Assembly (NCBI RefSeq): GCF_052425735.1
Contig: NC_135758.1
Span: forward strand, 34,844,001 to 34,908,000
Source: Oculina patagonica
Taxonomy: Eukaryota
Direction: 5' to 3'
Length of the DNA: 64,000 nt
Under the pieces are notes generated by a model, which saw only the letters and a list, made by a program, of their open reading frames with translations, did no database searches and was not told where the DNA came from. Made by a program: the position numbers and the translations under genes. Below are positions 19,620 to 61,529 of this stretch, piece by piece (the stretch's first letter is position 1; the number at the start of each line of letters is the position of its first letter).

Positions 19620-21943
19620 ATGCAAGCTTTTAATATCGCGTTATTATCCGTTATAGCATTTTCTGCGTTGTTAAGTTTAAATTCCCGTGTTTTCGCCACG
19701 GTTGAACCGCACAAAGATAATTTTCACAAGCACGAACATTTCGGCGCAAATCAAGAACACGACGTCAGATATGACCACGAAGCTTTCTTAGGTCCTGAGG
19801 CCGAGGAATTTGAGCACTTGACGCCTGAAGAATCCAAGAAAAGACTTCGAGTTATTGTGACCAAAATGATCGATACCAACAAAGACGGCCTGGTCTCGTA
19901 TGAAGAGCTGTCCGTGTGGATCGAGAAACAGAGGAAGGCATTCATGTATGAAGACGTGGACAAAAGGATCGCGGACGAAGACAAAGATGGCGATGGGGAG
20001 ATTTCTTGGGAAGAATATAAAAGAGCGCGGTTTGGAGAATGGGATAACACTAACCTCCCAAAAGACCATGTGAGTCAGTTTTTAAAAAGCTTGTTTCTTT
20101 AAATCCTATCTCGTCCCAATTTTTCTATTCCGAGTGTATTCGGTATTAATATGTGGTTTGTCTTAATGCAACAAAAGGAATTTTAGTCTATCCTTGGCTA
20201 TTCTTTGGTGACGTTCAGTTAATTAATAGATCCATGCTAATAGTTTTCCTTAGTCCTTTTGACTGCTTTTGCTTGTTGTTTGCTATAGCAGACCGATAAA
20301 AGTACAACACGTCAATTTTATGCCAAAGAAACCCAGCCATGGATACGTCGTAGTGAAAATACGAGGAAAACTCCTCGCGAGGAACGCGCGCGGTCATGAT
20401 CCCAATCAAAAGAAAGATTGTGCGAATAGAAAGAAAAATCAACATTTCGAAGAAAAATTAATTGTATAAATCACAAATTTTTTTTTTAATTTTATTTCGA
20501 AATCAACAGAATCTGCGCCGTCAAATACGTAAAGCAGAGTACAAGTTCAATATGGCGGATGCAGACAAAAATGGCAAAATGAACCGAGACGAGTACGTGG
20601 ACTTTGAACATCCTGAGGAAAACAAAAAGATGGAAGAAATTGCCTTAGATGAAGTCATTGAAGACGTGGATCAAAATGGAGACGGGTAAGGCAAATGACA
20701 CTGATTTACAGGTATTTTCTCATTACGATATTAATGCATTTATAAGCAAACAGGTGATAAGAATAAAAAAAGATTCGAAAGTGAACATCATCCTCATACA
20801 TCTAATGTTTCTAAAAGAAATGTATACCTTATTCTTACTAATTTTCGCGCGATTTCGCGAAATTCGGGAGCCGAATTTCGCGAGTACAATTTTCGCGAGA
20901 AGAAATTGTAGAAGTGTATAATTTCGCGATTGTAGTGTGGAGAAGTCAGATAAGGAACACTGGTCCTGGCATGTGGGGAGCGATGTGAGGAAGAGGTTGC
21001 CAGGGGAGTAGTGGAAGGGACAGTGAGAGGGGTTGTGGAGGTGATGTCGGGGTGTCGTGGGATTTTTTGAATCGCGAAAATAGTAAGAATAAGGTAACTG
21101 CAATACGTAGGGTGAATTAACATTTTGATCTTAGGACAAAAAGGGTGAAAATTCGAAAGGGCCATGCTACTTACTAACTTTTTTTTACTTTCGGCTGCCC
21201 ACCACCGGAAGTAAAAAAAGCGATAAGAGGTTTCGATTAGACGAGATCTTGTACAATCATCTTTCAATATACGAGTTAATAACTAAGTGACTCTCCACTA
21301 ATCTCGTTTGGCACGAGAAACAAAGGGCTTTTGGGGACAGGATTCTGAGTTAAGTTGAATTTATTTTGAATAGCTGTTTACCGAGAACATAAACTGTTAA
21401 AACACCCTTGATTAGCTTTGGAAGTCAAAAACGCTACCACTCTCCCACACAGTATAGAAACATCACGACTGCACACATGAAGACTGGAAGTCCCAAAATA
21501 TAGGACTGGAAATCCTTTGATTCCAGAGTCCTTCGTTTCTCGTGCCAAGTTTCCACCGAAAGGGTCTATGGGGACGAAAATGAGTGAGCTCACAAGCGAT
21601 AACTACTTTATATTTTAGGGTCATCACGGTTGGTGAATTTCTTGGCCAGTACCATGACGAAACCGACCCACCAGCCTGGGTAAAGCGCCAGCGACAAGAA
21701 TTCCACAAAAGATTCGACAAAAACGGCGACGGCAAAATGGACCGCGAGGAGGCGAGGCAATGGGTTCTACCAGAAAACCTCGACACCCACGACGAAACAG
21801 CACATCTGATTGACGGTACAGACGAGAATGCTGATGGGTTTCTGTCTGTTGATGAGATTATACTGCACTGGAATTTGTTTGTGGGAAGCCAAGCTACTGA
21901 TCATGGCCGCACTTTGAGAAAAGTCCGACACTCCGAACTCTAG
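19620..21943 (+). CDS. CALU: Calumenin/reticulocalbin (CREC family) EF-hand protein 2, ~316 aa; exons 19620-20069, 20510-20685, 21619-21943
   Basis: Signal peptide, YDHEAFLG, six EF-hand-like loops, FVGSQATDHG, C-terminal HSEL. GT-AG introns keep the frame (951 nt). Confidence 0.92.
20825..21096. mobile_element. MITE related to 14345-14864, in calumenin-2 intron 2
   Basis: TIRs TACCTTATTCTTACTA / TAGTAAGAATAAGGTA; internal ATTTCGCGA repeats; purine-rich core. Confidence 0.75.
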
Positions 21944-23063
21944 TCTAATAGATATATTTATTTCGTAGTATAGATCTATTTCAATTTACAGTTCGACACG
22001 GCTATTTTATCGCTACCAAAATCGTTACAATATTTGTTTTTCAAGTAAATACAATACGTATTAATTTTAACATAAGCTAAGACTGCTTTCTTTTACGATC
22101 CTGGGGTTAGGCTGGAGTTAGGATATTTTTTCGTTCTCTTGAAAGCGAGCACCGGTAGGCTGTGCACTGTATGATATCGTTCATAAGGAAACAAACCTTT
22201 TTCAGGACACTTGTTTAATTTGGAAGTCTTCCTTTGTATACCGCTTGCAAGTAAATAGTTTTAGAGTATAACATTTTTGTTACGGCTGGGAAACTGTCTT
22301 CTATTATCTTGGGTTAATACTGCCACTTAGGAATCTTTTAATAGTAAAGAATTTCATTATTTCATTAATTAAACATTGTAGCCTTTCGACTTTGGAATTT
22401 TTTTTTTTGTCAAATAAAGCTTTAAACGACTTCAGATAGAGAATTTTTTGCATTTACTGATTTTCTCCCTGTGTTCCCCAGCTATCAACATCAGTATTAT
22501 CACGAGTGTGGCTGTACTAAGTCTCGTCTATAAAGTAAAGGTACCTTCACAAAGATGGGTTCGTGGAGATCTGGAACAAAAATAGTTTCTACGATATCCC
22601 ACACTCCTCATTCCCAGAGCCATTAAAAGGACCTTTCTCGCTCGGAAATTGGCTGAGCCTGCGGGCGGTGTTACTGAAACAAATACGTTGGTTACTAACA
22701 GGTGGAGCATGCTGACGTGATAATTTACGCAATGCTGGCGAATGCTTTTCTGTGTTCTGATTGGGCAAAAAAATCACATACACTAGGATCGAAAATTTGA
22801 CGACACTTTTCGACACGGGCGGGACTGTCCAAGGGGGGGGGGGGGGGGGGTTAAGTAATGAGCAAAATAAAATACAGAACAAAATTGTTCAAACTCACAC
22901 TTTGGTCATTTTTATTTCTTTTTAAATAACGAATAGGGTCTGACATTCGTTAAAAGTATTTACAATAAACATTATTCAACTTTTTGTTTATAAATAAACA
23001 GTTCGCATAGCAACTGTAATGGAGGAAAACAAACACACTCTAATTACAAAGGACCGATTTTTG

Positions 23064-26000
23064 TTATCCATGATCTTCAATCTGCGACAAGAACAACTGT
23101 CGGACCTTATGTCGCTTGTGCATGGCAATATCATCAAACCGCTGAGCATAAATCCTGTAGATCTCGTTGCGCCTCTCTCTGGTGTCGTTGGTTGACAGCC
23201 TTGGCTCCTCCTCCACGGGCTGCCGGTTGCAAGACGGTGTCATGCCGGCCAGCACCTTCACTTTTCCCGCCTTTTGCGCGGTTCGCTTTTTTTCTGAAGG
23301 CTTGCTCTGAGTCTTGCCGCCAATTACTGGAAGTTTTGAACCGGGAGCAGACTAGGACAGTAAAAAAAGGAAATGTTAACAACTGTTTGCGTTTGTTTAA
23401 GTTACAAAGTAAAAAATTACATAAAAACTTAATCACAGGTTTACGTTCGCTTTATAGCTCTGAACGCGACAATTGAAAGCGGTTTATATTTCTTTTGTAC
23501 ATTGGGCTATCATCAAACTTGTTGTCGTTGTTGTTGTACTATTTACTGTCAGCAAAACAAAAACGTGCAATGCCGGGTTAATGCGCACATTGTTCATAAG
23601 TCAAAAGTGCATAACGGACCCTTTTTAGAACCCTTTTTAGAAGCTCACTCAAACAGTGGACAGCGTCTTTCGCGCGCGCTGATTGGCTACTCAAACTGGA
23701 TATCCTTTTTTATTATTCAACACATGCGCGCGCTGCCATATATGGTCAATTTTATTTTTCTTTTCGTATATATTCTTTTGTTTAATTTGTTATTTTACTT
23801 TATATTTTTTTTTTTTTTATTTTTTTTTTTTATTTTTTTTTATAAAAAAAAAATTTTTTTTTTATTTTTTTTTCCCCCCCCCCCTATTTCCAAAATTCAC
23901 CTCCGAGCAACTCGCGCGCGAAAACTGTACTCGTTAACGGAATAAACTAGTCAAAAGTCTTCCTTTCGGGCTTTATTATCTCATTGTTTAAGTATATACT
24001 AAACAACTATTCACCTCAGTGTCGGTGGCTAGTTGTGGACATTTACCTCGCCACCTCCACTTTGGTGAATAGTTGTTAACTAAACACCCACAACGACGAG
24101 TACGCCATAATCTTTGCACGTTGTTCAAAGCTTACTATATCATGTAGAAGGGAAGATGACATAACATTAGCATTTTTACCTGGGCCCGGAGTAACTGAGC
24201 GTGCCAGTAATTCGATCTTGTCACATGACCAGCGAACTCCTTATTGATTCCTTCCAATCTGTAAAAACGTTTTACAGAAATAAATTATTTAATGTTAAAA
24301 AAAAATCGTTGTGACAATTGCATTTACGAGCATCATTTAGTAACTAAAAGCCATGGAAACTTACTCTCTAGCAAGACCCATCTTTAAGTCATTCTCGCTG
24401 CTGTTAGCCTTAGTTGACATCCACGGCGTCTCCATTACGATCTACAACAAAAACAATTAGTCTTTAACTTTACAGTAGTCTGTGAACTGGCTTCTTAGTG
24501 GGGTGGTGTAGGGCGGGTTTAATATGTTTCCAGCTAAACGGGCAAGTTAAAGGGATAGTATGACTTCTCCTAGCAGTTAAACTCGTTCACAGGGTCTTTA
24601 ATCACAACCCCCCCCCCCCCTCCCCAGTCGACATAACATTAGCATCGTTCTACATTTTTTTAAACAACTGATGCTCCGTAGACATATAAATCTATGAGCA
24701 AACTGAATTACTGGCTACCAATACAACACTGACCTGTTTAGAGGGGGTGAGCTGGGGCGAGAGAGAAGCTAGTTTGACAGGTAGCCCATCTGAAGATCGA
24801 GCCTGAAACAAAAAACACAAGAGTATGGTTAGCCGGGTGCAGAATATGAAAAATAAATTTTTTTTTTGCATGAGTATGGCGGAAAGGAAATACAACTTTA
24901 TTTCCTAGGACAAGCATAAATCAAAGGAGGAATCGTAATTGTCATGATGCGAACAACTGACATACTGAAAACATCTCATGTGACAAGAGTGTGCGTATGC
25001 TATTATTATCCTACTTTAGAACTTCTACGGTCTTTTGTGCGGAAACACACGAAGAGGATTGAAGTGAAGAATTAGAACTTCTTCTTCAAGTGACGTCACG
25101 TAGCTCCTTCCACACTTATGCGTTTTCGCTTATCGTCCACACTACGAGCGAAAACGCTCGTGGATAACGTATTAGTGTGTACGGGGCTAGAAACACCTTT
25201 TTGACTCGCTTTGTACGACGTCAGTTTACAATCCTTTTACAGGCCCTGAGTGACTTCAAATCAACGTGCAATTTTTCCTTTCTGGGTTGCATTCTTTTTT
25301 TTTACGTTATATATATCATCAGTTGGAAGAATTATTTATTCATGAACTAGAGTAGTTTTTGTCAAAATCAGTAAATAACATCAATGATTTTACCTCACGA
25401 AGGGAAGAAGGTGTCCTTGTTTTTCCTTTCTCGATGTAATCTATGAAAGAGAGACAGAAAAATAGCAAATAAGATTTCTCTAACCTTTTCTCTGGTGCTA
25501 GACGGTGATTTCCTAACTTACCAAGCATGGTTGAGACAACGACCAACGTGGATTTAAGTAGGATCTGGTTCCCCTCAGTCTTGTTAAACAGCAATGACTG
25601 CCCTACTTCATAGAAACCCAGAGAGGCAAGAAAGCGCTGAAGTTCAGGGCTGTACCACAATGAACGAAGAACAAAGTCACTCGTCTTCATTATCCGCTCG
25701 GGATAACGACTACTGAGGCTTAGCTGAAAGGGACAGAGAAACGCATAATTAACATGATTATATGCTGTTGTTATTAATTAGTATAATGTGGGGGGGTATG
25801 CCACGAGGAGGGGAGAGGAAAGGAGCGGTATTTGCGTCCTATGGCCGAATACGGCGGTGGCCTAATGGTTAGTGCGTGGGCCCAGAGCACGGGGTCGTCA
25901 TGTTGTGGTCTTGGGCAAGCATTTCAATCTCATATTTCCTCTCTCCCGCGAAGATATTAAAAGCTACAAGCATGTTGTTGTAGAAACCGGCTGGAAAAAT

Positions 26001-29000
26001 GCTCAGATCCACCTGCAGTAGACAGGCAATCATCTCCCCTAGGACAAGTATTACGCTCCTTGCCGCAATTTAAATTTGCTTTTCTCAAATTAAGCACGCA
26101 TCTTTACTAGAAAGTTCAATGGTGTACAATAACCAAAGCGCAGATCTGATAAACTTACAAATTCTTTTAGCTTCTCCATAGTGTTTTTCTTCAGGGTGTT
26201 TGTGATCTTCGCCAAAGCGTAACCTCCACTGGAAGAAACCTTCAAGATATCTACATGAAAAGAACAAAAATGGTCACGCAAGATATATCACCAACCACCG
26301 CCTGGTTAGCTCAGTTGGCAGAGCGCCGGACTGCTGTGCGGGAGGTCGAGGGTTCGAACCTCTAGACCGGACCAACATTCAGGGTCTTAAAATAACTGTG
26401 AAGAGAACGTGCTGCCTTTGTAATTACATCTGCAAATGGTTAGACATTCTAGTCTTCTCGGAAAAGGACGATAAACTGTAGGACCCGTATCCTGTATCCT
26501 CAGTCTTATAACAGGGGACGTTACGGTTTAAGAGCCCACACACTATTCGCAAAGAGTAGGGCACGAAGTTCCCGGTGTTGTGGTCTGACCTTAATGTGTA
26601 GTAAATTACAGTATGTGTACAGCGCATTTGAACATATACATATGGAAAATGCACTATGTATAAATGCATTATCATTATCATTATTAGTAGTGAGCGTAAC
26701 ATAAGTAAACGTATTTGTGTGACATAGTGAACTGAGTTGGTAGTGAAAGTCACAGCCGTTACTAGGATAGTCACGTCACACAACGCCTCCTTTGTTCAAA
26801 AATACAAAATGTGAACATTTCAGAATAAACAATTTTAGTTTTATTTTACCACAAACTGCTTGTAGAACTTGTGACGTCATAGCCAGAGTCCCGTCAGGGT
26901 CCCAGTGGGGAAACACAACAAATGGATCTTTGTCATGTGCACCATCTTTTTGGAAGTCGAATCCGAGGAACGCAATGAACTCTGTAGCGCAAGGGGCCTC
27001 CAGAACATGGGAGCTTAGCTGTGCACACATGGTAAAGTCCTCCGTCAAAAGGAGCTCGGGGTGGTGATATGATAAGAGCATTTGATGGGCCAACTGTACC
27101 TAGTGTGAGTTAAACAAAACAAAAACATGAAAAGTGCTGAGAAAAGATTATCGTTCCTTGACAGTGCAAAATAAATGTTTAGTCAAGGTGAGTTTCTTCC
27201 ACATTTAAATATAATGCACTGATGATTGTTATTTATACTAACGGAAACAAGCCAGCAGGGGATCTAGGGGAGGGGCCCTAGCGTTTTGTCCCCCTTATTG
27301 TTGAAACGTACAAGGGCCCCTTAACTTCGCCTCCCCTCCCCTTTTTTAAGCAACTCTGGATCCCCCTGGAACCCTGGCTGCATTTTGAAAAACGATCAGT
27401 TTTTGTCAATAGTGTTTTATCAAGCAGAAAAGTTGGTAAAACCATTGACTGGCTCCTCGCTGACGTCTCAAATATCAGAGATGAACTTAAGATGTCATAG
27501 ATCAATCAGGGAAGTCGGCGGTGAAACCCATGAAAGTCACACATATGAATGTTGTGGAATTTTTTCCTGCCCTTTCCAGTCAGAGATGTCTCCTTTGGCA
27601 CAAAGTGCTTTAGTATACTATTGAGGGGGGTGAGGGGGCGGGGGAATGTATGCAGCAGCAAACGTCACAGTGGATGTGAAGTTGATTCATTTTCTTACCA
27701 CATCTTTGAGAGCTGGCAGTACATGTGGCAAACCACTGTGCTGTTGCAGGAGCTGTGTCAGCAATTCTTGAAATCTTTTCATTTTAACTGCAACTGATGG
27801 AACTGTGAAAAAGATCCTTGTGTTAAAAGGTATAAAGTAGAAGAAACTTCCACACTTCCAAATGCAACAAATGCTGGGTCAAAAAAGCCACCCTTGATTC
27901 AAAGTCCAGTGCCCTTATCTGAAAACTGGAAGTTACACATCAGCAGTCTTTGTGACTGTGTTACTTGTCAAATTTAGAAGAAAAAGTTACCTCACTCCAA
28001 AACTGTATTAGGGAGTTTAAATTAGTTAAATGCTATGTAGAAGTTTCTGTTGTTTTTCTTTTTTTTCGTCCTCCCTTGGTTTAGTGAGGAATGGTGGCCT
28101 AATGGTTCAGTGTGTTGGACTCTAGACAAAGAAGTCAGGCTTCGAGCCAAAGCCTCTTTTTTTTTTTTTTTTTGGGGGAGGGGGGGGGAGAGTTATCTTC
28201 TGTTTTGTTTTTTCCCCTAGCAGTTGAGCACTGGGCTGTTGACACATCTGATTCTGAAAAGGGTTAGCTTTACTTTTACTTGGCACATTATTTGTTTAAC
28301 CTTTGTTGTCCAGTGTTTCTGTTGTGACAAGAGGAAACCTCTCAGGGGAGGACCTCTTCACCACTCGATCCAGTACCCCATTAAACAGCTGATGTCTTAA
28401 CTTCATTAAATTCACTGGAGTGTCAAATCCAACATGAACAAATGACGCCCAGGAGTCTGGGGATGACATATGCTCTACACTTCTCACTTGGGTCCAGGCC
28501 TCCTTCAGAGATTCACTGACAGTTTTACCCTAAAGACAAAGTTCAGGAACAGCAGATGTTAGATTTACATAACTTTAGAAAAAGACCAGTAAACAACTTA
28601 TTATATGAGAGAGTGTTTTACTGACACCACTTGTGATTCCTACGCCACTCCATCCGGGACCCGAGTGCGTTTTCCGTGACACCTTGGAGTGACTCGCTCT
28701 TCGTCCGATTCGCGCTTGTGTTGCACGACACGAAGTTTTGTCCCATGACGCCCCATTTTGAGGGATCTCCAAGGACCGCGCCTCAAAGAGTATTTGGGCG
28801 ATAGATGTAACTGTCTTAAAAAAGGGTAAAACGTTCCCCATGGAGACCCCGGCGGAGGACGCTAGGAGGAGAAGGAGGGAGCCCGAGGGTGGGACAGGGG
28901 AGGAGGGCAGCCGAGAATGCGACTACAGGGGGAAGGCCACGAGACCGTTGGAGGTAGTGGAAGTGGGGGGACCCCCACACAACTCGCCGACGGGAGACCC

Positions 29001-32000
29001 CCCCAGGAGCCGCGTGACCCGCCCCAGTTCGATGTTGTTTTTCGCAGAACCCAGCAGAAAAGAAGTGGAGTAGGGTCGCTCAAGTTGAGTGGAGCCGTGA
29101 GACGCCCCGCACCAATAGGAGAGTGAGGGAGGGGCGACGGGCGACACGAGATTGCGCCCCGTCCCAGGGAGGAGGAGGGGGGGGGAGGGGAGCGGCGGAC
29201 CGTGAGGTCCCCCCGGAAAGAGACGGAGAGAAGGGTCCAGGAGGTTCTCGCCACGTGTAATATCCTCTATTTACACGTAATTAGGTACAAGTTTTTTTCT
29301 TAAATTGTGGTTTTGAAATTTACTTGAAATGTAATCAGTTCACATGTTATCTAAAATCTAACCTTTAAACTTGTTAAAATACGAAATGTGCTTAAGCCTT
29401 AGTTCTTAAAGAATAAAAAGTATTGAAAACACCTATATACCTAAATGTCCAAGTAGTATGAAAAATAAATAGGTTTACATGTATCACATTTTCCTTTTTT
29501 AAATATACATGTACAATCAAGACTATATGCTATGTACATACCATTTCCAAACCAGAGTAGAACTTGTAAAACAGGTTTAGCAGTGCAGCCTGAGGGGCAG
29601 ACCACAGCGGCATCACCACAGACTGCACACCAGCTGCCAAGAGAGCTGTTGCCAAATGGAAGCTTGCATGCTTTAATTGACAATACTGGTGGCCACACCC
29701 ACAACATGCATTCAACACGACAAGCTTAGTTGACACTTTCAACAGAGCAATGTCTGACACCGTAACCAAGAACGACTCTTTTGATGAAGGGTTGCCATGG
29801 TGATGAATTGCCGGGGACAGTGCTATGGATGCCTCTGGCCAGCTTCCATATGTCGCCAAATGAACCACAGATGTTTCAGGCAGCGTCTTCAGGAAGTGTT
29901 CCTTGGTTGCTTGGCAACCACTGATTGGATCCACCCCTAGCAGCGAAGCAATCATGTTTACCTCCTCTTCTGCTAGATCTGATTGGTTCTTTGGACTCCA
30001 GATCTTTCCATTGAAATCTACACTTGTAATCTCTGGATTTCCTTGTACAAGAATCTTTGGAGAATCTTGCACTTGGTTTTTAGCATTGGGTGAATGTTCG
30101 GCTGCTTTGGTTTTCTGTGAAACTGCTCTAATACAAGGTAGAATGCGGACATTAAACTCTTCATGCAAGAACTTCCCTTCTTGGTCTTGCAAACAAGGAA
30201 AAGGAACTGAATTAACTTCCAGATCTGGAATAATTACAAGTTCATTAACACCATTCCCAAGTTCAATTTTCAGCTCATCCTCCACTTGACTCAAAAGCAA
30301 ATGATACAACTTTTGAAGTGGTGTGAGTTTAGTAGAGTAAAGGAACTCACAAGAGTAGCAAGATTTTTGGCTCTTCATTTCATCTGATGACTCACTGAGC
30401 TTTCCCGTAACTGCATCTGGTAATGCTCGATGGTCACAATTGTAGCTTCCTTTGCAAGTACCGTGTAGCTCTTCGATGCACAATTTAATTTTGTTAACAA
30501 AGGTAGAATGACCACAGCTCTTGTGCCAGTGACATTTCACAATGCCTTTCCCTGGCGACAGCATCCACAAGAGGAAACCAGATGGAATTGTAGAGAAGAA
30601 CAAAAGTATTGCTTGTTGAGAGTTAACAATGTCAACAATATCCTTTGCTGAGTATGGCGTGACAAGAGGTTCAGAAGACAGTGATAATGAGGACTCTGCC
30701 ATTGCAAGAATGTTCTGATGTCTTAAAATGTTAACAAGAATTCTTGATCTACAATGTTCAGCAATTTCCAATGCCTCCTCTTCTAAATTCATTTCAATTA
30801 AAGCCTCTTGCAAGTCCTTGTAACACTGATCCAGCTTTTCAAGCAAAGGATCTTTATAAATCAAACTCTTTCCATACTTTGACAACAGTTTGTCTTCTAA
30901 GACTGGAATGGCCTTGTTGAAGTACTGCCAAGAGGTTTCAAAATTTCTCATCGATTTTGTTATCTGCGCAAGGGCAAGCCTGCACTCTAACTCCTCTTCC
31001 AAATCACTGTGCTCCACTGCCAACTTCAAACACATCTCGTAATAATATTGAGCATGGTGAAACTGATGAAGCTCCCTGTAGCATGCGGCAACAAGGCTGA
31101 ATGCTTTGTACTCCAGCTCCTGCATCTTGTTCACCCTGGCCAGCTGAAGGTGCTGCTCAAAATAACTAAGAGCTTTGGTGTGTTCGCCCATGAGTTTATA
31201 CAGACATCCAAAGTTCCTAAATGCCATAAGTTCTGAGACTTTATCATTCAAGCTCTGTGCAAGCTGCAAGTGCTGCTCATGATTGACAGTTGCCAATTTA
31301 AAGCTCCCCATGTTTGCATATACTGTGCCGACGTTACCATAGGCATAAGCTGCACCGTGACGATCATCAAACTTTTTACAAAGCTGCAGCTCAATTTTGT
31401 GGCATTCCAAAGATTTTTCGTAGTTTCCTTGTAAGAGTTCAAGATCACCAAGGTTTGCATATGCTGTGGTCAGGTTCTCTTGGTCAATAAACTTCAACAC
31501 TTCCATGTACTCCTGTGCATGGACCAAAGCTTTCTTGTAGTCTCCCATGAGTTTGTAGGCTGCAGATAAGTTCCATACTGCTCTACGTTCAACATCACTG
31601 TTCCAGTATTCCTGGTACGTTTCTCTGTCCTCGTTGCTATTTTGCAGATCTCTTCCAACTGCTAACAGCTTGCCATTGTAAGACACAGCTTGGACATACT
31701 GTGTGAGTGTGTGATAGATATTTGCAAGTTTTACGTAAGACTTGATTTCATATTCTCTGTCGTTGAAATCTAAAGCTATGGAAAGACACTTTCTTGCAAC
31801 AGACAGTGCTTCAGTGTAATGGTACAGGCTGTAATGAGCTTCACTCAAGATGAGCAGCGCCATCATCACTGCTCTGCTATTCTGGGATGACACTCCACCA
31901 TGATCCACACTCTTTCTCCCATCTCCAAATACCTGGCTACCAGTTGCGAGATATATAGATGAAAACCCAGAGACTGGATTGGGAAGTGTTGACTGCAACT

Positions 32001-33903
32001 CATCAGCAACATGGTTGCAACTTGCAGGATCCTGGTCTGTCTCCTTTAAATCTTTGTTACCAAAAAGGTTTGCAATGCTCGCTTGTGAATACAACAGCTG
32101 TTCATTCCAGCCGTAATGTGCTTTCAAAGCTGTTGAGATGACACTGATGCAGATTTTGTAATTTCCAGTTTCGTACAACCTTTTTCCAAGTTGAACAAAT
32201 CTCTCAAATTTTTGAAAGCTTGCACCTGAAATTAATCAGTTAAAATTAATTTGAGATTTTTTTTTTATTATAAATAAAGATACCCTTTAGCTAAATCCTT
32301 AGTAGTGAATTTAGTGAGCAATGGAAAATCCTGGAGAGGAGGCTTGAAAAGATTCAATTTAGGTGTTGTGAATCTCTGATCGACATTTATATAGTAACAC
32401 TCAAAGAAAGAAATTTACCTGTAACTTATATGGTATGTATTACGTACGTATCATGTATAAATAAAAGATAATGCTCAGGTCTAAAATTAATGACGTCCTT
32501 GCACATCTCTGTTACCTTTTGCCAAGCCACCCCTTTTTAATTTTGGCTGAATTATAAATTATCATCAAGTTACACCCGGGGGGGGGGGGGGGTCTCTTTT
32601 TGGGGGTTTAATTTTTTTTTTTTTTTTTTTTTTTTTATAAAAAGAATGGGGGGGGGGCCCCCCCCCCCCCCCCCCCCCCCCACACCCTTCTTCCCTGCAG
32701 ATACTAAAGGTAAACTAAAGTATTCCACACCTATTCAGTTCCTTTACTTTTAATTCTTTATCTAGGGATCACAAATCTTACCTTGGTCGGAGAGAGTGAG
32801 CTCCTCTGTTTCTGACATTTGACAGATACATCCAACAGCTTCAATAATCCTTAACAGAAGCTCAGTAGGCTGTGCTGTGTCCAACTCATAAGCCTTGAGG
32901 TACGACTTTAAACATTCTCTGTAGTTTCCAAGGTTTTCAAGTGAGACAGCTCTCAAGAAGTGGCCCTGCAGACCAAATTATATTGATAACTATTAACCGG
33001 TCACGGTCTATAGCTACCTAAGGGCCCAAAAAAGGCGGTGAGAGAGGAGTGGAAAGGGTACACATTATAGTGAACAAGACAGAGAGGTCTTACCTGAAAG
33101 GGGTACCTCTTTCAGGCTGGAGGTGTATATGTTGTGGTTTAACTTTATCTTTGGTTTAAAATTTCTCAAACCAGTTTGATTTTTACTATCATTTCACATT
33201 TATTATCACGATCTGAAATAATGGCAAATGGAAATCAGAGCAGTTTGAAAAATTTTAAAGCAACATTTACCATAACCAGCAAACGCTAGTCATGTAGTTA
33301 AGTATCTCAGCTAATTATTAAAAAAAAAAAAACATTGCCAGTTCTTTAATTTAGCAACTTTATTAAGAGTTAAGCTTTGGTTTGCAAGTCTAATTAACAA
33401 TGAATCCAAAAAGTTCTTACCTTTGGTTTGTGTGGAATGATACTTATAAGACTTTCAGCATCTTTCTTGGATTCATTAAACATGCCTAACTTGGCATATA
33501 CTGCTGATCTACAGCCAAGAACATCTTCATCATCAGGCGACAGGGTCAAAGCATCAGAGTAGAAACTGATGGCTTGAAGGAACTGGTCATTTTGAAATGC
33601 TTTATCACCCTTGATGGAAAGTGCTTTGAACTGAAAATTTATACAAATTTAGTTTTTCTTTCATTTTAATAAAACCACCAAATGAAATCTTAGCATACTT
33701 GGCTAAGTCCTTCTCTCTGCAGTAAAAGAACGATCTATTAATTATCAATTATTTTAATTAATTATAATTGATATTTATAAAAAAAAATAATAATTGATAT
33801 TTATTAGACTACATGCAGAGTTTTTTTTGAATGAATAGTATGAGGACTGTGTTGATTATATTCTCTTTAAAGTTGGAATGGGGAAATGGTGTTTGTTTTT
33901 TTT

Positions 33904-33967
<64 letters not shown>

Positions 33968-34530
33968 TTATTTTAAAATTTTCAGTCTGCAGAGTATGGC
34001 AAGTTCGTGCGCGAGCCTTTTCTCTAATTTTTTTGCCACACCGGTTCGTTTCGGCAGCATGACCATGCACACTTGAGTTCCTGACTACCGGTCGTATTGC
34101 ACGCAGTGCACGCCGCTAGAAATGGCTCTGCATGCATGAGATCACATCGAGTTCCACCATACTCTTCAGACTGGCCAGAGACAATTAGCACTTTTACCAC
34201 ACCCACATCATTTAAACCCATATAACAAACTAAATGCTGGTTTTCAGACCCTTTCTAGTTTCTTACAGCTTGGACATTTAATCTTCTATGCCTTTTCTGC
34301 TTATTTCATACGCCTAGAGCCCCAATACTGTACCCCTTTTGATCTTGAGCAGGCTGAACCCCCTTACACCAGTCCTGGTGTTAGAATATCTAAAGTGAGA
34401 AATGAACTAAAAGATACGCTTTAGCTCTACTGAAATAATTTACTAAACTATCTATGGCCTGCTGGCCAGCTTTGAACAAATTAGGAAAGATTTTAAGCTA
34501 CGTTTAGAACAATTCACTTACCTTTTCCAT
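23064..34530 (-). CDS. TTC28-like TPR + CHAT domain protein, ~1500 aa, about 14 exons
   Basis: Exons include 34522-34530 (MEK), 33421-33630 (TPR: KGDKAFQNDQFLQAISFYSDAL), 32782-32965, 29542-32225 (TPR array AYANLG/AYGNVG; CHAT motifs LVIIPDLEV..VPFPCL, HLATYG, LVVLNACC, VVMPLWS), 28301-28529 (PDSWASFVHVG), 27699-27802, ~26852-27099, ~26157-26250, 25522-25723, ~24734-24802, ~24365-24441, ~24180-24258 and a terminal exon ending at TAA 23064. Confidence 0.88.
23650..24080 (+). repeat. Dispersed repeat with terminal hairpin; second partial copy at ~60715-60815
   Basis: AAACAGTGGA.AGCG...GCGCGCTGATTGGCTACTCAAACT occurs at both loci; ACAACTATTCACC...GGTGAATAGTTGT inverted repeat at ~24004-24075. 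Confidence 0.65.
25850..26065 (+). mobile_element. Degenerate copy of the CORE-like SINE, in a TTC28-like intron
   Basis: GGTGGCCTAATGGTTAGTGCG...GTCTTGGGCAAGCATTT...CCTCTCTCCC resembles 5766-6050. Confidence 0.55.
26298..26690 (+). mobile_element. tRNA-derived SINE with Deu/Nin-like domain and LINE-like 3' tail
   Basis: tRNA head with A box TAGCTCAGTTGG and B box GGTTCGAACC; central GGAAAAGGACGATAAACTGTAGGACCCG...AGAGCCCACACACTATTCGCAAAGAGTAGGG...CCCGGTG; tail ending TATAAATGCATTATCATTATCATTATT. Confidence 0.75.
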
Positions 34531-35060
34531 ACTTGAAATGACTTTTTTGAAAAAATAATAAGTTCAAGAGACTATCAAGGAATTCAACAAGTCAACTACT
34601 TTAGAAACCACAAAATGATAGCCATTTGCAGAAGAAAATTGGAAAAAGGAAAAACCTAATTGAGATTTTCAACTTATTAAACTTAAATTTGTATAGTTCA
34701 TTGAATAAAAAGACAACATTATCACCAATAATCACATAAACTCCACATAAATAGTCTTGTTTACAATCTGACACGATCACTCCGCCATCTTGATTTGCTT
34801 AGCAACCAACCATACTCGGCCCTAGTCTCTTTCCTTCAAATTAGTAGCGCCTTGCAAGAATTAGCCTTTTGCCTGCTCATAAGTGTTAAATTTTTAATAA
34901 GACTCTTTTCTTTTGATTTTAAGACCATTTCACTCGACAAAGGTGCACCTTACCTCAAGCCACATTGAATTATACGTCTGTGCGACTTCGTGAAACGAAA
35001 TCGCTATTTCATTGTTCAACTACCCAAAGATTCCGTGGTTTCATTGTCTTCAACAAAACT

Positions 35061-35906
35061 ATGGCAGCTAAACGGATTTTAGCGATCATTCTTGTTTTGT
35101 CTCTGGGTTTCTTTTGTTTTCTCAAAAGCGAGGAAGTAGCGACAGATGGCGACTTGGATGACTTCCGAAAGTGGTTTGATGACCACGGTGGAAGATGCCG
35201 TTGCAGATTCATGAGAAACAAAGACTACAAGTTCACTGCGGTGGCTGACAGACGGATTGTGGAAAAGGAGTCAATTCTTATGGTCCCTCAGTCTCTACTT
35301 GTAAATTCTGCCACTGTTGAAAGGTACCATATCATTATTTCCAGTTATCATTAAAATCTGATTGCTATTTATGTGGAACAAGAATTGTTTCCTCTTTAAA
35401 ATCAAAGGTAGATCAGGGAACTTTTTACAGTAGTGAGTTTGTGGTGAAGCTGAAAACGTGCTTTGACCTTGTTAGTTAAGTCACTGATCATGTGTGACAG
35501 TACATGGTGCCCTCAAAAGTACCACAGGTAAAGCCTGACTTGGTGGTACCGTTAACAAAAACAAAAACTCCCAAAATATCCAAATCTGGGAGATTTCTAA
35601 TTTCATGTTAAATTACCTCTTGAAGAAGCCAGAAAATAGTGAAAAATAGTCAACCATAAAATTAAAAAAAAAACACTTTAAATAATCAAAATTCTCCCTT
35701 GTATTATTCAAAATATACCAACAATAAGTGTAAAACTCGGTAGGTATTTCTAGCACTTTTGTTTTCCAGTGGGTTGAAGTGACCTGTACAGGAGACTGGG
35801 AGATCTGGCCTTTATCCAGGAAACTCCCAGATAATCTAGAGCAGCTGGCATGTGAACTTTAAGTTGTGTCTCCCAGCCAGAAAAAAAAAAAAAAAAAAAA
35901 AAAAAA

Positions 35907-35939
<33 letters not shown>

Positions 35940-36994
35940 TATTTTTAGCCTTGTAATTTTTGCAATCCATTTAATCTTAGCTGGTATCCAAAGCCACTTG
36001 TTACCAACAACACCTTAACAAATGTTTTTGTTTGAAGGAAAATATTCACAAACTTTTGTTTTTATTTCAGTTCAATGATAGGGCCAACCCTTGAGCAGTT
36101 TTCTCTTGTGGAACATCAGATCCTCAACCGTCCAGATTACATGGAGCGACGTGTGATGCAGTTGATGCAGTTGGCCGTATTTGTTCTCTATTCTGTTCAC
36201 ACAAGAGATGAACAGTGGCTTCCTTACTTCAAGATTCTTACAAATCATAAATGTGATGCACTGTGGATGTGGAGTGAAGAGGAGCTGAAAGAGCTTCAAG
36301 ATGAGAAATTGGCTCAGAGAGCTCTCAAGTGGAAGAAGATGGTTGATATGCTTGCTGCCAACATCACACCAAAGCTGAATAGCTTTGGCTTGTTTGCTGG
36401 AAAAGATCTTGATCAAGAGACTTTGGTAAGATTCCAATCAGAACTTTATTTTAAATTCATTACTGTAGTTGAAAAACAACTAGAAAAAAAAAACAACCTC
36501 TATGCCCCCCCACCCCCCCCCCCAAAAAGAAAAGAAAAGAAAAGAAGAAAAAATAATAAGGAGGACATGAGCCCATGACTTAGTGATAATGGAAAGGTGC
36601 AAATGTTCTACCAGATCAGCTATATATGAAGGCACTGGGAGCAAGCTTCTTTATAATATTTTTGTTTTTGTCATCTATAACACTCATTTGGCGAGTAAAT
36701 ACTTTCAAATGGCCATTAATTATTTTCACGGTCGGCAGTTTAATAAAACACGCCATTTCTTTTTAGTGCTGAAACCACAGCACCGCAAGACGATTCATGA
36801 GTGAAACTAGGTGAATGCAGTCAGCGCCTGTGCCAGATATGGGCGAAGTTGGCGCATAGTTTGTCTCAATATTTATTTTCGGGTTCCTGATAAATTGTTA
36901 ATTCTATAAAATGGAAAAAAGGATATTCCCAAAATATCAAGGAAATTTTTCAATTTTTTTTTTTGTTTTTTGTTTTTTTAAGAATATTTTTTTT

Positions 36995-37045
<51 letters not shown>

Positions 37046-38994
37046 CTCCCCCCCCTCTTTTTTTTTTCCCCCCCCNNNNNNNNNNNNNNNNNNNNNNNNN
37101 NNNNNNNNNNNNNNNNNNNNNNNNNNNNNNNNNNNNNNNNNNNNNNNNNNNNNNNNNNNNNNNNNNNNNNNNNNNNNNNNNNNNNNNNNNNNNNNNNNNN
37201 NNNNNNNNTATGTGCTGTTAGCAGTAGGAAACACACCAGCAAGACATTGAGTAAACTTAAATTTATTCTCAATGACATGAAACTTGTGACTTAATTACCA
37301 GTGGTTTCTAGGACAATACCTAAATAAAGAAATATATTTCACTAAGAACAGAAATAACGGCATGCAGCAAAGGAAATACGATACAAATGAAAGAAACAAC
37401 ATATACCTGACGATTAAGATACATGGCGAAAACGGAGGTACAGCATAAACGAACATAGCTTCGTTAAACGTTAACTAACTTCTCTTCGCAGTTAAACAAT
37501 ATACATAAAATGCGTGAAAGACTAGACTATATAAACATGACTGCGGTAGGCTGGGCCGAAAGTCCACGGCCGATAAGGGATGGGTTCTTATATGTGCTGT
37601 GATATTTCAGATAAATGCAGTTTGTGCAGTCCAATCAAACAGTTTTAACGTGACAAGTGACACAGGACGCCCAGTCAGGACTTTGGTACCTGTAAGTTGT
37701 GCCATCTTTTTACATCTGATAACCATTGAATTTTAATTAACTATCATAAATACAAGCCCTGATAAGTATCTTCTGTAAGTTAATTCCCTGTCCCTGTTAA
37801 GCAAGGCTGGAGGCCAAGCACCCAAGGATTGTGATTTTATCAGCCCAAGAGTTCCTTTTGTTTTGGTTTTATGACACTCAATTGAAAACTACTCCATTAG
37901 GTATAGTTTGCAAAGACAATAAAAATTTTAGAGATTTATCACACAGAATGATAGTTAGAAAGTGTTCTTGACCGGTTCTTGACCCTATGTGCACGTCCTG
38001 TCATTGGGACCACAGCTTGTCATTTGGAAATGCAGCATGAGTTGCTTGGTAATCCATCTTGTCAAGGCTCAGGAACGTCTCGCCATGCGTAGCTTACAAT
38101 TTACGCGTAGTCGGCGCCTAGACAACCCCTATTTACATGCAGGCTTATAAAAATTGCCATCAACTTTTTTGGGCGTTACACTAAAAAGGATAAACGCTTT
38201 TTGCCCACGCTCGCGTTATATGATACTTATACTATAGGATTCTGTTCATCTTCAAAACTGTAGCACTTATCTAAGATTCGATACTGAATTCTGCTTTCCA
38301 GGGCTTAAATATGTTCACATATCGTCCCAATGCTGGAGGCACATGGTGGACCAAGGGTGATGCGCTTCGATACAGACATGTTAACGCCTCGGTTGAAGAA
38401 GGTGACGCAATCTTCATTGATGTCAACCCAACTGGCGACAGCACTCAAACACTTTTGGAATATGGCGTGTTCGTTCCTGAAGGAAGCAAATTCTTTAGTC
38501 CTTTACCAGAGCAAAACAGTCGAATGCGAAGGAGACTTATGGAGATGTTGAAACTCAAGAAAAGGGTAAAATACAGCGAGAAGTTCACTTTTAAGGCTGC
38601 TGGTCTTCCGCATTTCAGAATTCAAGCGCTTTCAGACAAAGAAGTGGACGAAATAGTGCGAGCAGGAAGCAATCCTAGTAAATTATCCGAGCTAAAAAAA
38701 GTATTCAGTAGTCCCTCGCTTCATGTTGAAAGCAACCCCTTGTACTCGTGCAAAGACGAAGTGGTCGCTTTAAATTTGTTGTCGTTGCATCTGCGAGATG
38801 AAATGTCAGGTAGATCTACAGGAATGCCACAAGACGAAGACATCTTGACCAAAGACATTCCTGCAAGGCTGCGCATTGCTGTGGAGTTTAGACTTAAGTT
38901 TAAGAAACTTGTTACTCACTATCTTGATATTACTAGCGCCCGAGCGATAGAGACAAAAAGAGAATGTCTGTCTAGGAAGAGGGACGAGCTGTAA
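35061..38994 (+). CDS. SET-domain protein (SETD3/Rubisco-LSMT class) with signal peptide and C-terminal RDEL, 463 aa; exons 35061-35323, 36071-36425, 37611-37691, 38302-38994
   Basis: N-terminus MAAKRILAIILVLSLGFFCFLKS. SET/iSET-like segments: FRKWFDDHGG, AVADRRIVEKESILMVPQSLLV, LAVFVLY..WLPYFKIL...LWMWSEEELKELQ, AVQSNSF, LVPGLNMF, GDAIFI...LLEYGVF, plus an LSMT substrate-binding-like tail (DEDIL...RLRIAVEFRLKFKKLV). GT-AG exons sum to 1392 nt. Confidence 0.85.
37076..37208. other. Assembly gap (N run) flanked by poly-T/C noise
   Basis: Run of n characters. Confidence 1.
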
Positions 38995-40654
38995 GATTGT
39001 TTTAACTGTCCAATCTGCTGTGCAAAAGGAGCGTTCAAACAAAAAACTTGATGTAAAACGAAGTCTAGGTACCGAAAACCTTTACAGTTTTTTAACATTT
39101 GAATTCACTGTAACTTTAGTCCACTTTAGTTTCGACTGAACTCTAAATCTTAAGTCCTCAGTTAGGTTTCATATTCTTAGTATAGGCTAGTGTTTAGTAA
39201 AATTTGGTACTGAGTTCTGCTTGTAGGGAACAGATATAAAAGAAAATTTATTTAGCTATTTATTTAAAAGTCGAATGTCATTATTTAATTAAATAAAATA
39301 AGTTTACTTAATATATCCCTGTGTTCAGTACACTTTTGAATTAACGAAATGTTTTTTGTCTTTCTTAATTTCTTCACGATTGACTGACCTAGCCTGTTCC
39401 AGGTGTTTGGTTTAATAGTCACTGAGGAACAACGCGAAGAACGGCGAGTGGAAGAAAGAAGGCGGAGGGTTTCGCCCTCCTTACAGGGTTGTTCAGGTCT
39501 TGGAAAATTGAAATTTTGTTTTTTTTTTTTTTTTTTTGTTTTTTTTTTTTTGTGAAAAGTATATAAAATTTTTTTTATAAAATAAAAAAGTTTTTTTTTT
39601 AAAAAGAAAAAAAAAATTTTATTTAAAAATTAATATAAAACCCTTCTAAACCGTCTATTCTTTTGCACTCCTCGCCGTAATTCGCTCTGCTCCGTAACTA
39701 ACCACACCTGGGCGTCTTGAAGGAGCAATACCTCGCCGGGTGCATCTTGCGCATTCGGTTAATTCGTCTCAAACTTCTCCAATCAACGCTTATCATATAT
39801 TGGCCCGTTTCCTTCAATTTAAATGTAGTTTTAAACGTTGCAAAAGTGTCTTAATAGTATACTTCCGTCGTAGCTCCTTTTAAGGTACGCTTCGCGAGGT
39901 TTTGGTAATGTTTTGCAAGTCTAGCTCCATCATCCTCCGGCCGGACCCGAGATCACACTTAGCATGCAAAAAAGCGTTGAAGACATTATAGAGCAGCCAA
40001 TATCATTTTCACCAATACCAACTTCCCAGGTTACAAGGTCCGTCACAACTGTTGAATCAGTTTACCTTTATCCTCCACCCCCCACCCCGCCCACAACCTA
40101 CAAGAAAACCATGGCGCTTAGAGGCAAGTTGACATTGTGGGGGGGTAACACTGGGATTCAGCAAAATATGTCGAAGCTTGCAGGTCACACTAATGAGGTT
40201 TAGAGAAAAAAATGAAGATCGAACATCTATATTTTACGTAAACAGAATAGAATAAAGTTTTTTATTTCTGTTCCTTGTATTAGAGGCATTTTGATAGGAT
40301 TTGAAGGATCAAGAGTCGCACGGGATATGTTGAATGAGTGGTTCTGAACTCATCTATCGAGAGAAAAAATTTTACATGTTTAACTTGACCCCTATCAGTG
40401 GTAATTTGCTTGTGATAGAAGTAGGAACTTATGTATAGTGTATGCCCGAAAAGATTAGTCGCGAACAGTACGATCCAATTCAAGCGATTGACCCAGTACA
40501 CAGAATGTATACCAATCAAAGGCCTAGATATAGCTAGCTGAGAAGTTCACCATTCCAGTGGCTGAGAAACGACCATCATTTAACTGGCAGATCCTCTCTG
40601 TCGTTTTTTTTTTCTCGGCCATCCTTCGTCCCCCCCCCAGTACATGACCAATGT

Positions 40655-49731: not shown

Positions 49732-50259
49732 ATGATTGAAAGCGATCTGCTTTTCCCGTGGCTGGACCCCAACCTTCACGCCATGAGAGACCAGCTGAAG
49801 GACTTAAACAACTGTGAAGCGATGAGTAAAGTGAGGAAATGCAAGCAATTTGTCCAGCGACACCCAGTCGCTTCAGTCTTCCTCGGCACGTTTGTCATTA
49901 CTGGTTTTCTTCCTTTCTTTCTATTCCTGGCCTTCGTGGTCGGATCTTCTGTATTTGTTCTGTTCTCCATTCTTCTCTTTCAAGGCGGGGTTCTTGCAGT
50001 GGGAATGTTATGTCTCCTGGGAATGTTTGTACCGATTGTGTTATTTGGAACCAAAATAACAGCCTTTGTGTATTTCATCTATCTCATCAATGCAATGGTC
50101 CTTCGCGTGGCACACATCTTAACAAAAACAATTGTGTGGTTACCATCCACAATTCTCAAAAATGCCAGCCAAAAATTCCACGATATATTTCCGTGTTTTG
50201 GAGACGGAGTCAGAGTGGAATTACATCGTCGCTCGAGTTCATATTATTGTGACAATTGA
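49732..50259 (+). CDS. LDAF1: LDAF1/promethin (TMEM159)-like membrane protein, paralogue 1
   Basis: FVQRHPVASVFLGTFVITGFLPFFLFLAFVVGS...FQGGVLAVGMLCLL matches the promethin HP...P..F.....(E/Q)G hydrophobic-hairpin pattern. Acceptor ttttag precedes the ATG. Confidence 0.75.
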   Translation: MIESDLLFPWLDPNLHAMRDQLKDLNNCEAMSKVRKCKQFVQRHPVASVFLGTFVITGFLPFFLFLAFVVGSSVFVLFSILLFQGGVLAVGMLCLLGMFVPIVLFGTKITAFVYFIYLINAMVLRVAHILTKTIVWLPSTILKNASQKFHDIFPCFGDGVRVELHRRSSSYYCDN

Positions 50260-51902: not shown

Positions 51903-52044
51903 NNNNNNNNNNNNNNNNNNNNNNNNNNNNNNNNNNNNNNNNNNNNNNNNNNNNNNNNNNNNNNNNNNNNNNNNNNNNNNNNNNNNNNNNNNNNNNNNNN
52001 NNNNNNNNNNNNNNNNNNNNNNNNNNNNNNNNNNNNNNNNNNNN
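51903..52044. other. Assembly gap (N run)
   Basis: Run of n characters. Confidence 1.
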
Positions 52045-61243: not shown

Positions 61244-61529
61244 TGTGCGGTTTTCATTTGAGTGTCGTAAAACCAGAACTAAAGTAATCACTCTGGCCAA
61301 TCACAAAGGACACAGACAATCCAGTGAACCAATCAAAACTCGACGGAAATACATGTCGCTGGCGCAAAGCGCGGGAAAACGGTGTGAGCCAGTCACGATT
61401 GGTTTGGGTCTCACTTCTGATTAGATGAGAAAGCGGCGCGACTTTTTTTTTAAACCAATCACAAAAAAAAGTAATGCAAAACCAATGAAATTCAGGATCA
61501 CTTTCGACACTCAAATGAAAACCGCTCTA
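61244..61529. mobile_element. MITE with ~25-bp TIRs
   Basis: GCGGTTTTCATTTGAGTGTCG ... CGACACTCAAATGAAAACCGC; internal CCAATCA repeats. Confidence 0.8.

Follow-up and report, generated by a model that had tools for sequence, protein, structure and literature searches.

In an attempt to understand whether a protein with a SET fold can reside within an animal's endoplasmic reticulum (ER) lumen, and what it might do there, we analyzed a gene of the coral Oculina patagonica. SET-domain proteins are familiar as methyltransferases of the cytosol, nucleus, or plastid. The gene lies at positions 35061–38994 on the forward strand of a 64,000-nucleotide stretch of genomic DNA, referred to below as the window (NCBI RefSeq assembly GCF_052425735.1, contig NC_135758.1, positions 34,844,001 to 34,908,000 of the forward strand); all coordinates below are those of the window. 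A first-pass annotation, made from the letters of the DNA alone, had proposed a SET fold re-routed to the ER lumen, where it could bind or modify secreted proteins such as skeletal organic matrix or collagens. The reading that we favor, and that we consider probable although well short of certain, is that the gene encodes a soluble ER-lumenal pseudoenzyme of the SETD3/LSMT fold that is retrieved by the KDEL receptor, binds a lumenal client, and is common to Hexacorallia, in which it is found in stony corals and sea anemones.

The first step was to establish what the gene encodes. It consists of four exons, its three introns all run from GT to AG, and splicing gives a coding sequence of 1392 nucleotides that is in frame and is translated into 463 amino acids. 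The predicted protein begins with MAAKRILAIILVLSLGFFCFLKS, ends with SRKRDEL directly before the stop codon, and carries the N-glycosylation sequons NIT185, NVT219, and NAS261; splicing of the four exons thus reproduced the product, the RDEL end, and the sequons described in the first-pass annotation. Transcript evidence was taken from the contigs of three public runs (X1, X2, and X7, with two organism labels and labeled “RNA?”) over positions 34900–39300. The features of the gene are as follows.

34938..35060, forward strand: 5′ untranslated region (minimum extent); an X2 transcript contig spans 34938–35324 without a joint.
35061..35323, forward strand: exon 1, residues 1–88 (part), starting with ATG; GT donor at 35324, and joint 35323/36071 in X2 and X7 contigs.
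35061..35129, forward strand: signal-like N-terminus, residues 1–23, in exon 1, which also encodes the first SET strands.
36071..36425, forward strand: exon 2, residues 88–206, an i-SET-like, helical insert in the SET domain; flanked by an AG acceptor and a GT donor, profile positions 74–208.
37076..37208, no strand: assembly gap (N) in intron 2; transcripts skip 36426–37610, and the ortholog profile has no hole at the exon 2/3 boundary.
37611..37691, forward strand: exon 3, residues 207–233, the strand that in SETD3 forms the lining of the substrate groove; joint 36425/37611 in three runs, contains the invariant Cys211.
37647..37655, forward strand: invariant sequon N219-V-T221 in exon 3, invariant in 11 of 11 sequences.
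38302..38994, forward strand: exon 4, residues 234–463 and the stop codon, encoding what remains of the SET core, a C-terminal helical domain of the Rubisco-LSMT type, and the RDEL end; joint 37691/38302 in three runs.
38317..38322, forward strand: Thr239-Tyr240, at the position of the S-adenosylmethionine (AdoMet)-binding Asn-His dyad; opposite the N-H of LSMT and SETD3 in profile-to-PDB alignments.
38422..38424, forward strand: Val274, in place of the catalytic Tyr; aligned to the Tyr of LSMT IQYD and to SETD3 Tyr313.
38980..38991, forward strand: RDEL, residues 460–463, with the stop codon directly after it at 38992–38994.
38995..39300, forward strand: 3′ untranslated region (at least to here); X1, X2, and X7 transcript contigs extend to 39178–39300.

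The three contig runs behaved as transcript assemblies, with depth on the exons and zero depth in the introns. All three runs joined 36424/5 to 37610/1, and 37691 to 38302, without intervening letters, contigs of two of them joined 35323 to 36071, and a single 1128-nucleotide contig ran uninterrupted through exons 2, 3, and 4 with no extra letters. When a profile of nine orthologs was searched against the genome, it matched in exactly four exon pieces (profile positions 1–91, 74–208, 207–234, and 233–464), with no match beyond these exons, and the junction peptides VESSMIGP, ETLINAVC, and LVPGLNMF agreed with orthologous proteins predicted from independent assemblies. Because the transcript joints were clean and the ortholog profile was fully covered, the gap at 37076–37208 is intronic and conceals no exon; an exon hidden in it was ruled out. 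Similarly, the frame upstream of the ATG at 35061 contained several stops and no other ATG, and together with the unspliced contig that begins at 34938 this makes the start codon secure and rules out an upstream start. The gene is real, transcribed, and spliced as modeled: all three junctions, which the first-pass annotation had left to be confirmed with RNA, were found in transcript contigs, and neither an upstream start nor a different last exon was supported by the transcripts and the upstream stops. Long A/T homopolymer and low-complexity tracts were observed at 35869–35950 (intron 1) and 36939–37075 (intron 2); the second abuts the assembly gap and probably explains the break in the assembly there.

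Relatives of the protein were collected using the exon pieces and the closest database ortholog, P0011 (86% identity to the window protein), as queries. Searched exhaustively with phmmer against 1.84 billion cluster representatives, exon 4 returned only 8 proteins, and a word-indexed profile search returned 25; all belonged to the same family. The full-length relatives included several stony-coral proteins of 463–464 amino acids, among them that of Orbicella faveolata (LOC110042961; XP_020604010.1 from this species is a listed member of the P0011 cluster). In sea anemones, relatives were found in Nematostella vectensis (LOC5506140; UniProt A7SND2), Exaiptasia diaphana (LOC110253017), and Actinia tenebrosa (LOC116294947), and a partial protein was found in Actinostola. 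The databases annotate these proteins as “uncharacterized” or give only the name of the Rubisco-LSMT domain. Between the window protein and those of the anemones, identity is 44–50%. Orthologs from octocorals, medusozoans, or bilaterians were not detected, the sole exhaustive search being that with one exon as a single sequence, and from the searches made we read the family as restricted to Hexacorallia. The gene is single-copy, with no paralog found in the 529-Mb genome. The only other exon with a Rubis-subs-bind domain that was detected in the genome (L002, G000:C9:18232351-18232689, reverse strand; 47.6 bits) lies on another contig and presumably belongs to a canonical SETD3/4/6-type gene. 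Among the differences listed relative to the transcripts of a related species, 19 of 24 changed codons were synonymous; this, together with the 45–52% identity to the anemone orthologs, indicates that the gene is under purifying selection.

We then asked which fold the protein adopts. Apart from chance matches, Pfam gave only a sub-threshold match for the four exon pieces, that of Rubis-subs-bind (PF09273) to exon 4 (E 0.0033, 18.5 bits against a cut-off of 21.6). The same domain matched 9 of 9 orthologs at E ≤ 1 (best 1e-07), and P0002, the only member for which the score was displayed, reached 24.1 bits, above the cut-off of 21.6. The Pfam SET model (PF00856) had no match at E ≤ 1, either in the exon pieces or in the nine full-length orthologs. 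A phmmer search of exon 4 against the PDB gave nothing meaningful, and because this single-sequence search was uninformative, the nine-ortholog profile was needed to obtain PDB matches. It matched pTAC14/PAP7 (E 1.2e-13) and Rubisco LSMT (E 3e-11) over the SET core and insert, and SETD3 (E 3e-6 to 3e-5) over positions 27–441. An AlphaFold model of P0011 had a mean predicted local distance difference test (pLDDT) score of 79 and a predicted template modeling (TM) score (pTM) of 0.70, and Foldseek aligned it in the PDB with SETD3, LSMT, and SETD6 over ~450 columns (E 1e-16 to 1e-11, TM 0.62–0.73). The AFDB clusters and the ESM Atlas yielded only generic SET/LSMT clusters (~15% identity; same family). 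Because the profile, AlphaFold/Foldseek, AFDB, and the Atlas agree, the SET fold named in the first-pass annotation holds, and the modeled fold is that of the two-domain SETD3/LSMT/SETD6 class, with a SET domain containing a helical insert and an LSMT-type C-terminal domain.

Three known proteins provide the frame for comparison. SETD3 (PDB 6mbk, 6ict, 3smt), an actin-histidine N-methyltransferase, was the best whole-length structural match to the P0011 model (TM 0.70–0.73). Sequence identity is only ~16%, and SETD3 is cytosolic, with neither a signal peptide nor an xDEL tail. Rubisco LSMT (PDB 1mlv, 2h21) shares the two-domain architecture of the coral protein but is a plant plastid enzyme with a transit peptide and keeps the Asn-His dyad and the Tyr of IQYD, both of which are lost in the coral protein. 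The best profile match, pTAC14/PAP7 of the plastid-encoded RNA polymerase (PDB 8w9z, 8qma), covered the i-SET region and SET core; it is likewise a plant plastid protein without ER targeting, and its aligned sequence retains the NH motif. Since pTAC14 serves as a structural subunit of a complex, it offers a precedent for a non-catalytic use of the SET/LSMT fold.

The location of the protein was judged from its two ends. The signal-peptide call was based on hydrophobicity and a −3/−1 site heuristic applied to nine full-length proteins. In the window protein, residues 1–5 carry a charge of +2 and residues 6–21 form a 16-amino-acid uncharged core (KD12 3.0). The n-region was short throughout, positively charged in 8 of the 9 proteins and acidic in none, and all nine had an uncharged Leu/Ile/Phe-rich core of 12–22 amino acids followed by small-residue −3/−1 sites, with candidate cleavage (marked by a slash) at FLKS/EE in corals, LVLS/EN in Nematostella, and LTTA/ND in Exaiptasia. 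Beyond residue 40, no 19-mer with a mean Kyte–Doolittle value > 1.6 was found in any of the nine. Over the first 23 residues, the window protein was 17–26% identical to the anemone proteins, compared with 45–52% over the remainder, and low N-terminal identity with retained character would fit the behavior of a signal peptide. In the P0011 model, residues 2–22 formed an isolated helix with a linker of low confidence after it, and since the fold alignments mostly began at residues 27–36, this helix lies outside the domain.

The same N-terminus, if it were not cleaved, would act as a signal anchor and make the product a type II ER membrane protein with its SET-fold domain in the lumen. An uncharged run of 16–22 amino acids in several orthologs, the positive charges ahead of it in most of them, and the single continuous helix at residues 2–22 of the P0011 model are compatible with such an anchor. 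However, the core measures only 12 amino acids in Nematostella, it is broken by Ser, Gly, and His before it reaches the small-residue sites FLKS/EE, LVLS/EN, and LTTA/ND, and a KDEL-type tail, which is typical of soluble ER residents, would be redundant on an anchored protein. We therefore consider a membrane-anchored form unlikely, and return to the soluble protein.

At the other end, every intact C-terminus of the family (32–33) ended in -[DE]EL, with 24 RDEL, 7 KDEL, 1 GDEL, and 1 GEEL; the last two end the two deposited Nematostella versions of LOC5506140/A7SND2 (P0003 and P0032). K/RDEL was thus present in 31 of the 33 tails, and residues −5 to −8 varied (SRKR, SRDK, SQPK, or SG before or at the motif). 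The RDEL of the window protein fits the PROSITE ER motif [KRHQSA]-[DENQ]-E-L, and by our own arithmetic only ~1 in 7000 random tails of uniform composition would carry a C-terminal [KRHQSA][DENQ]EL; the presence of -[DE]EL at every intact C-terminus of the family thus exceeds chance. The last seven residues of the P0011 model were coil with low pLDDT, so the tail is probably exposed. We know of no KDEL-type ER resident with a SET fold. In combining a signal-like N-terminus with a C-terminal K/RDEL, the coral protein resembles BiP, the PDI family, calreticulin, and others, whose tails are read by KDEL receptors; in a systematic screen, ER localization was efficient with either K or R at position −4 (PMC2140024).

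If the xDEL tail only slowed or regulated exit, the protein would be largely secreted, into the mesoglea, mucus, or calcifying space. The reported release of some xDEL proteins upon ER calcium depletion (PMC8276033) and the non-canonical GDEL and GEEL of Nematostella, which may mean weaker retention in that species, can be cited for secretion. Against this stand the strict retention of K/RDEL in 31 of 33 tails and a literature search (with supplementary tables outside its scope) in which no paper was found to connect Rubisco-LSMT-domain proteins with corals or to mention the family accessions. A mainly secreted protein thus appears very unlikely.

Two further features bear on whether the protein enters the secretory pathway at all. 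The sequon N219-x-T221 was invariant in 11 of 11 aligned sequences, whereas the other two sequons were found only in corals; all three sequons of the first-pass annotation are present in the window protein, but only one is conserved in the family. In addition, five Cys (48, 149, 211, 383, and 455) were invariant across the family. The invariant sequon and the five Cys are hints of lumenal life. They also speak against a cytosolic or nuclear protein like SETD3/4/6, in which the hydrophobic N-terminus and the RDEL would be incidental. To our knowledge, all characterized SETD3/4/6/LSMT relatives are cytosolic, nuclear, or plastidic, which is the argument for such a location; however, both signals are kept across the coral–anemone split while the adjacent residues drift, and because of this co-conservation we regard a cytosolic or nuclear location as highly improbable. 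As a signal-like N-terminus and a -[DE]EL tail are conserved in all orthologs and no other hydrophobic segment is present, ER-lumenal residence is well supported as a strong prediction from sequence. Co-conservation of the N-terminal signal and xDEL was suggested in the first-pass annotation as a test of the idea, and a signal-like N-terminus together with an xDEL-type tail was found in every ortholog from corals to sea anemones. Furthermore, in accordance with the claim that an ER-lumenal SET protein is not a recognized animal family, our literature search (in which supplementary tables were likewise outside the scope) found no paper describing an ER-lumenal or KDEL-bearing SET protein and none naming the six family accessions.

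The remaining question is what a SET fold would do in the ER lumen. The residues through which SETD3 contacts S-adenosylhomocysteine include Asn278, His279, Arg254, Tyr313, and Phe327, of which Asn278, His279, and Phe327 are common to SETD3, LSMT, and SETD6, and kcat is lowered ~800-fold in the N278A mutant and ~36-fold in Y313F (PMC6400499). The corresponding residues were identified using three independent reference alignments (LSMT, pTAC14, and SETD3), in which Asn278/His279/Tyr313/Arg254 of SETD3 read T/Y/V/N in the window protein. Thr239-Tyr240 stands in place of the Asn-His dyad, and the family has T, K, R, N, or P followed by Y, V, or M; Val274 replaces the catalytic/substrate-orienting Tyr (SETD3 Tyr313, LSMT IQYD), a position occupied by V, M, or L and never by Tyr; and the N at the Arg254 position varies across the family. 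The GxG motif, which is GLGLVA in LSMT and GFGLRA in SETD3, is KFTAVA in the window protein and SVEVIA or other variants elsewhere in the family, with no Gly. Because these three defining features of active SET enzymes (Asn-His, Tyr, and GxG) are absent, we did not class the protein as a methyltransferase, and most likely it is not one. The option of the first-pass annotation that the protein modifies secreted proteins is thus unlikely, as the AdoMet-binding and catalytic residues are replaced family-wide. In contrast to the catalytic set, the strands lining the groove are the most conserved part of the protein, and Q214, S217, N219, T221, R229, P233, W248, W249, and G278-D279-S280 are invariant in the family.

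A different use of the same groove can be envisaged: the active site may have been rebuilt, giving an ER-lumenal SET-fold enzyme of Hexacorallia that modifies secretory proteins through a novel lumenal modification, i.e., non-canonical methylation or some other chemistry. The concentration of invariant residues in the groove and pocket (Q214 to GDS278-280) and a fold that is intact from end to end are what such an enzyme would be expected to have. However, the position of the AdoMet-contacting Asn is variable even within the family, that of the catalytic Tyr holds V, M, or L, the GxG is lost, and N278A and Y313F cripple SETD3 (PMC6400499). The lack of any Pfam SET match at E ≤ 1 points in the same direction. 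Moreover, we know of no established route by which AdoMet would reach the ER lumen of animals, and our literature search on this subject found only a preprint on a plant Golgi AdoMet transporter, with nothing for animals. We consider a rebuilt enzyme decidedly unlikely; if it did exist, it would imply a currently unrecognized cofactor supply to the animal ER lumen.

These considerations lead back to the ER-lumenal pseudoenzyme that binds a client. A client-binding role is more likely than methyl transfer because the catalytic set is lost while the groove strands stay conserved. In such a scheme, the chain would enter the ER through Sec61 by means of its N-terminal signal, with probable cleavage near residue 23, and would fold in the lumen, where it may gain disulfides and a glycan at N219. 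In the cis-Golgi, the KDEL receptor would bind the exposed RDEL and send the protein back to the ER. There, the former substrate groove between the two domains would hold a lumenal client protein or peptide, and the protein would serve as a specialized chaperone, escort, or retention factor. ER entry and cycling with the KDEL receptor are predicted from the conserved signals, whereas the details of folding and the binding of a client are what we infer from them and from the fold. A role specific to the skeleton was considered and is countered by the orthologs of non-calcifying anemones; because these animals keep the gene, the link to skeletal organic matrix made in the first-pass annotation is unlikely to describe the core role.

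Several points weigh against this reading. The structural model is not of the window protein itself but of P0011, an ortholog with 86% identity to it; the alignment behind the model was shallow (28 rows), and the SET core around residues 250–290 has low pLDDT (49–68). The correspondences of the catalytic residues come from sequence-profile alignments at ~16% identity and not from three-dimensional superposition, and the strong conservation of the groove could just as well reflect an active site that has been rewired. Finally, the GDEL and GEEL tails of Nematostella fall outside the PROSITE motif and may be less efficient.

Other features were observed in the window. In intron 3, a ~40-nucleotide motif beginning TTTTGGTTTTATGACACTCAATTGAAAAC occurs at 37855–37894, with a second copy at 61250–61278 on the reverse strand. 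Its summed contig depth was 19,000–27,000 in the three contig runs, raw poly-A reads continued from it into unrelated sequence, and it had no Rfam match; it resembles a dispersed repeat of very high abundance that many transcripts carry. The raw poly-A run X24 gave reads on an intronic repeat only, and an Rfam scan of 34000–40000 detected no family. On the strand opposite to the SET gene and ~3 kb upstream of it, an uninterrupted open reading frame of 882 amino acids (29530–32178, reverse strand) encodes TPR repeats (TPR_12, E 9e-24) and a C-terminal CHAT domain (E 2e-35). An open reading frame of 175 amino acids at 49732–50259 on the forward strand contains a Promethin domain (PF16015, E 5e-12), which we take to be the family to which the ER/lipid-droplet protein TMEM159/LDAF1 belongs. 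Outside the SET gene, the window contains a second assembly gap (N), at 51903–52044.

Based on these results, the family joins two known elements, a fold and a retrieval system, in a previously undescribed combination that, as far as our searches reach, is restricted to Hexacorallia. The SETD3/LSMT fold would have been moved to the secretory pathway with the loss of its catalytic residues, and kept there across the divergence of stony corals and sea anemones. If the localization is confirmed, the protein would add a new fold to the ER residents and provide a clear case of a SET pseudoenzyme. The relevance to biomineralization is lesser, because non-calcifying anemones share the gene. A possible client is a secretory product specific to cnidarians, for example a component of the nematocyst, mesoglea, or mucus, and since Nematostella and Exaiptasia both carry the gene, they offer a tractable entry to the question of the client.

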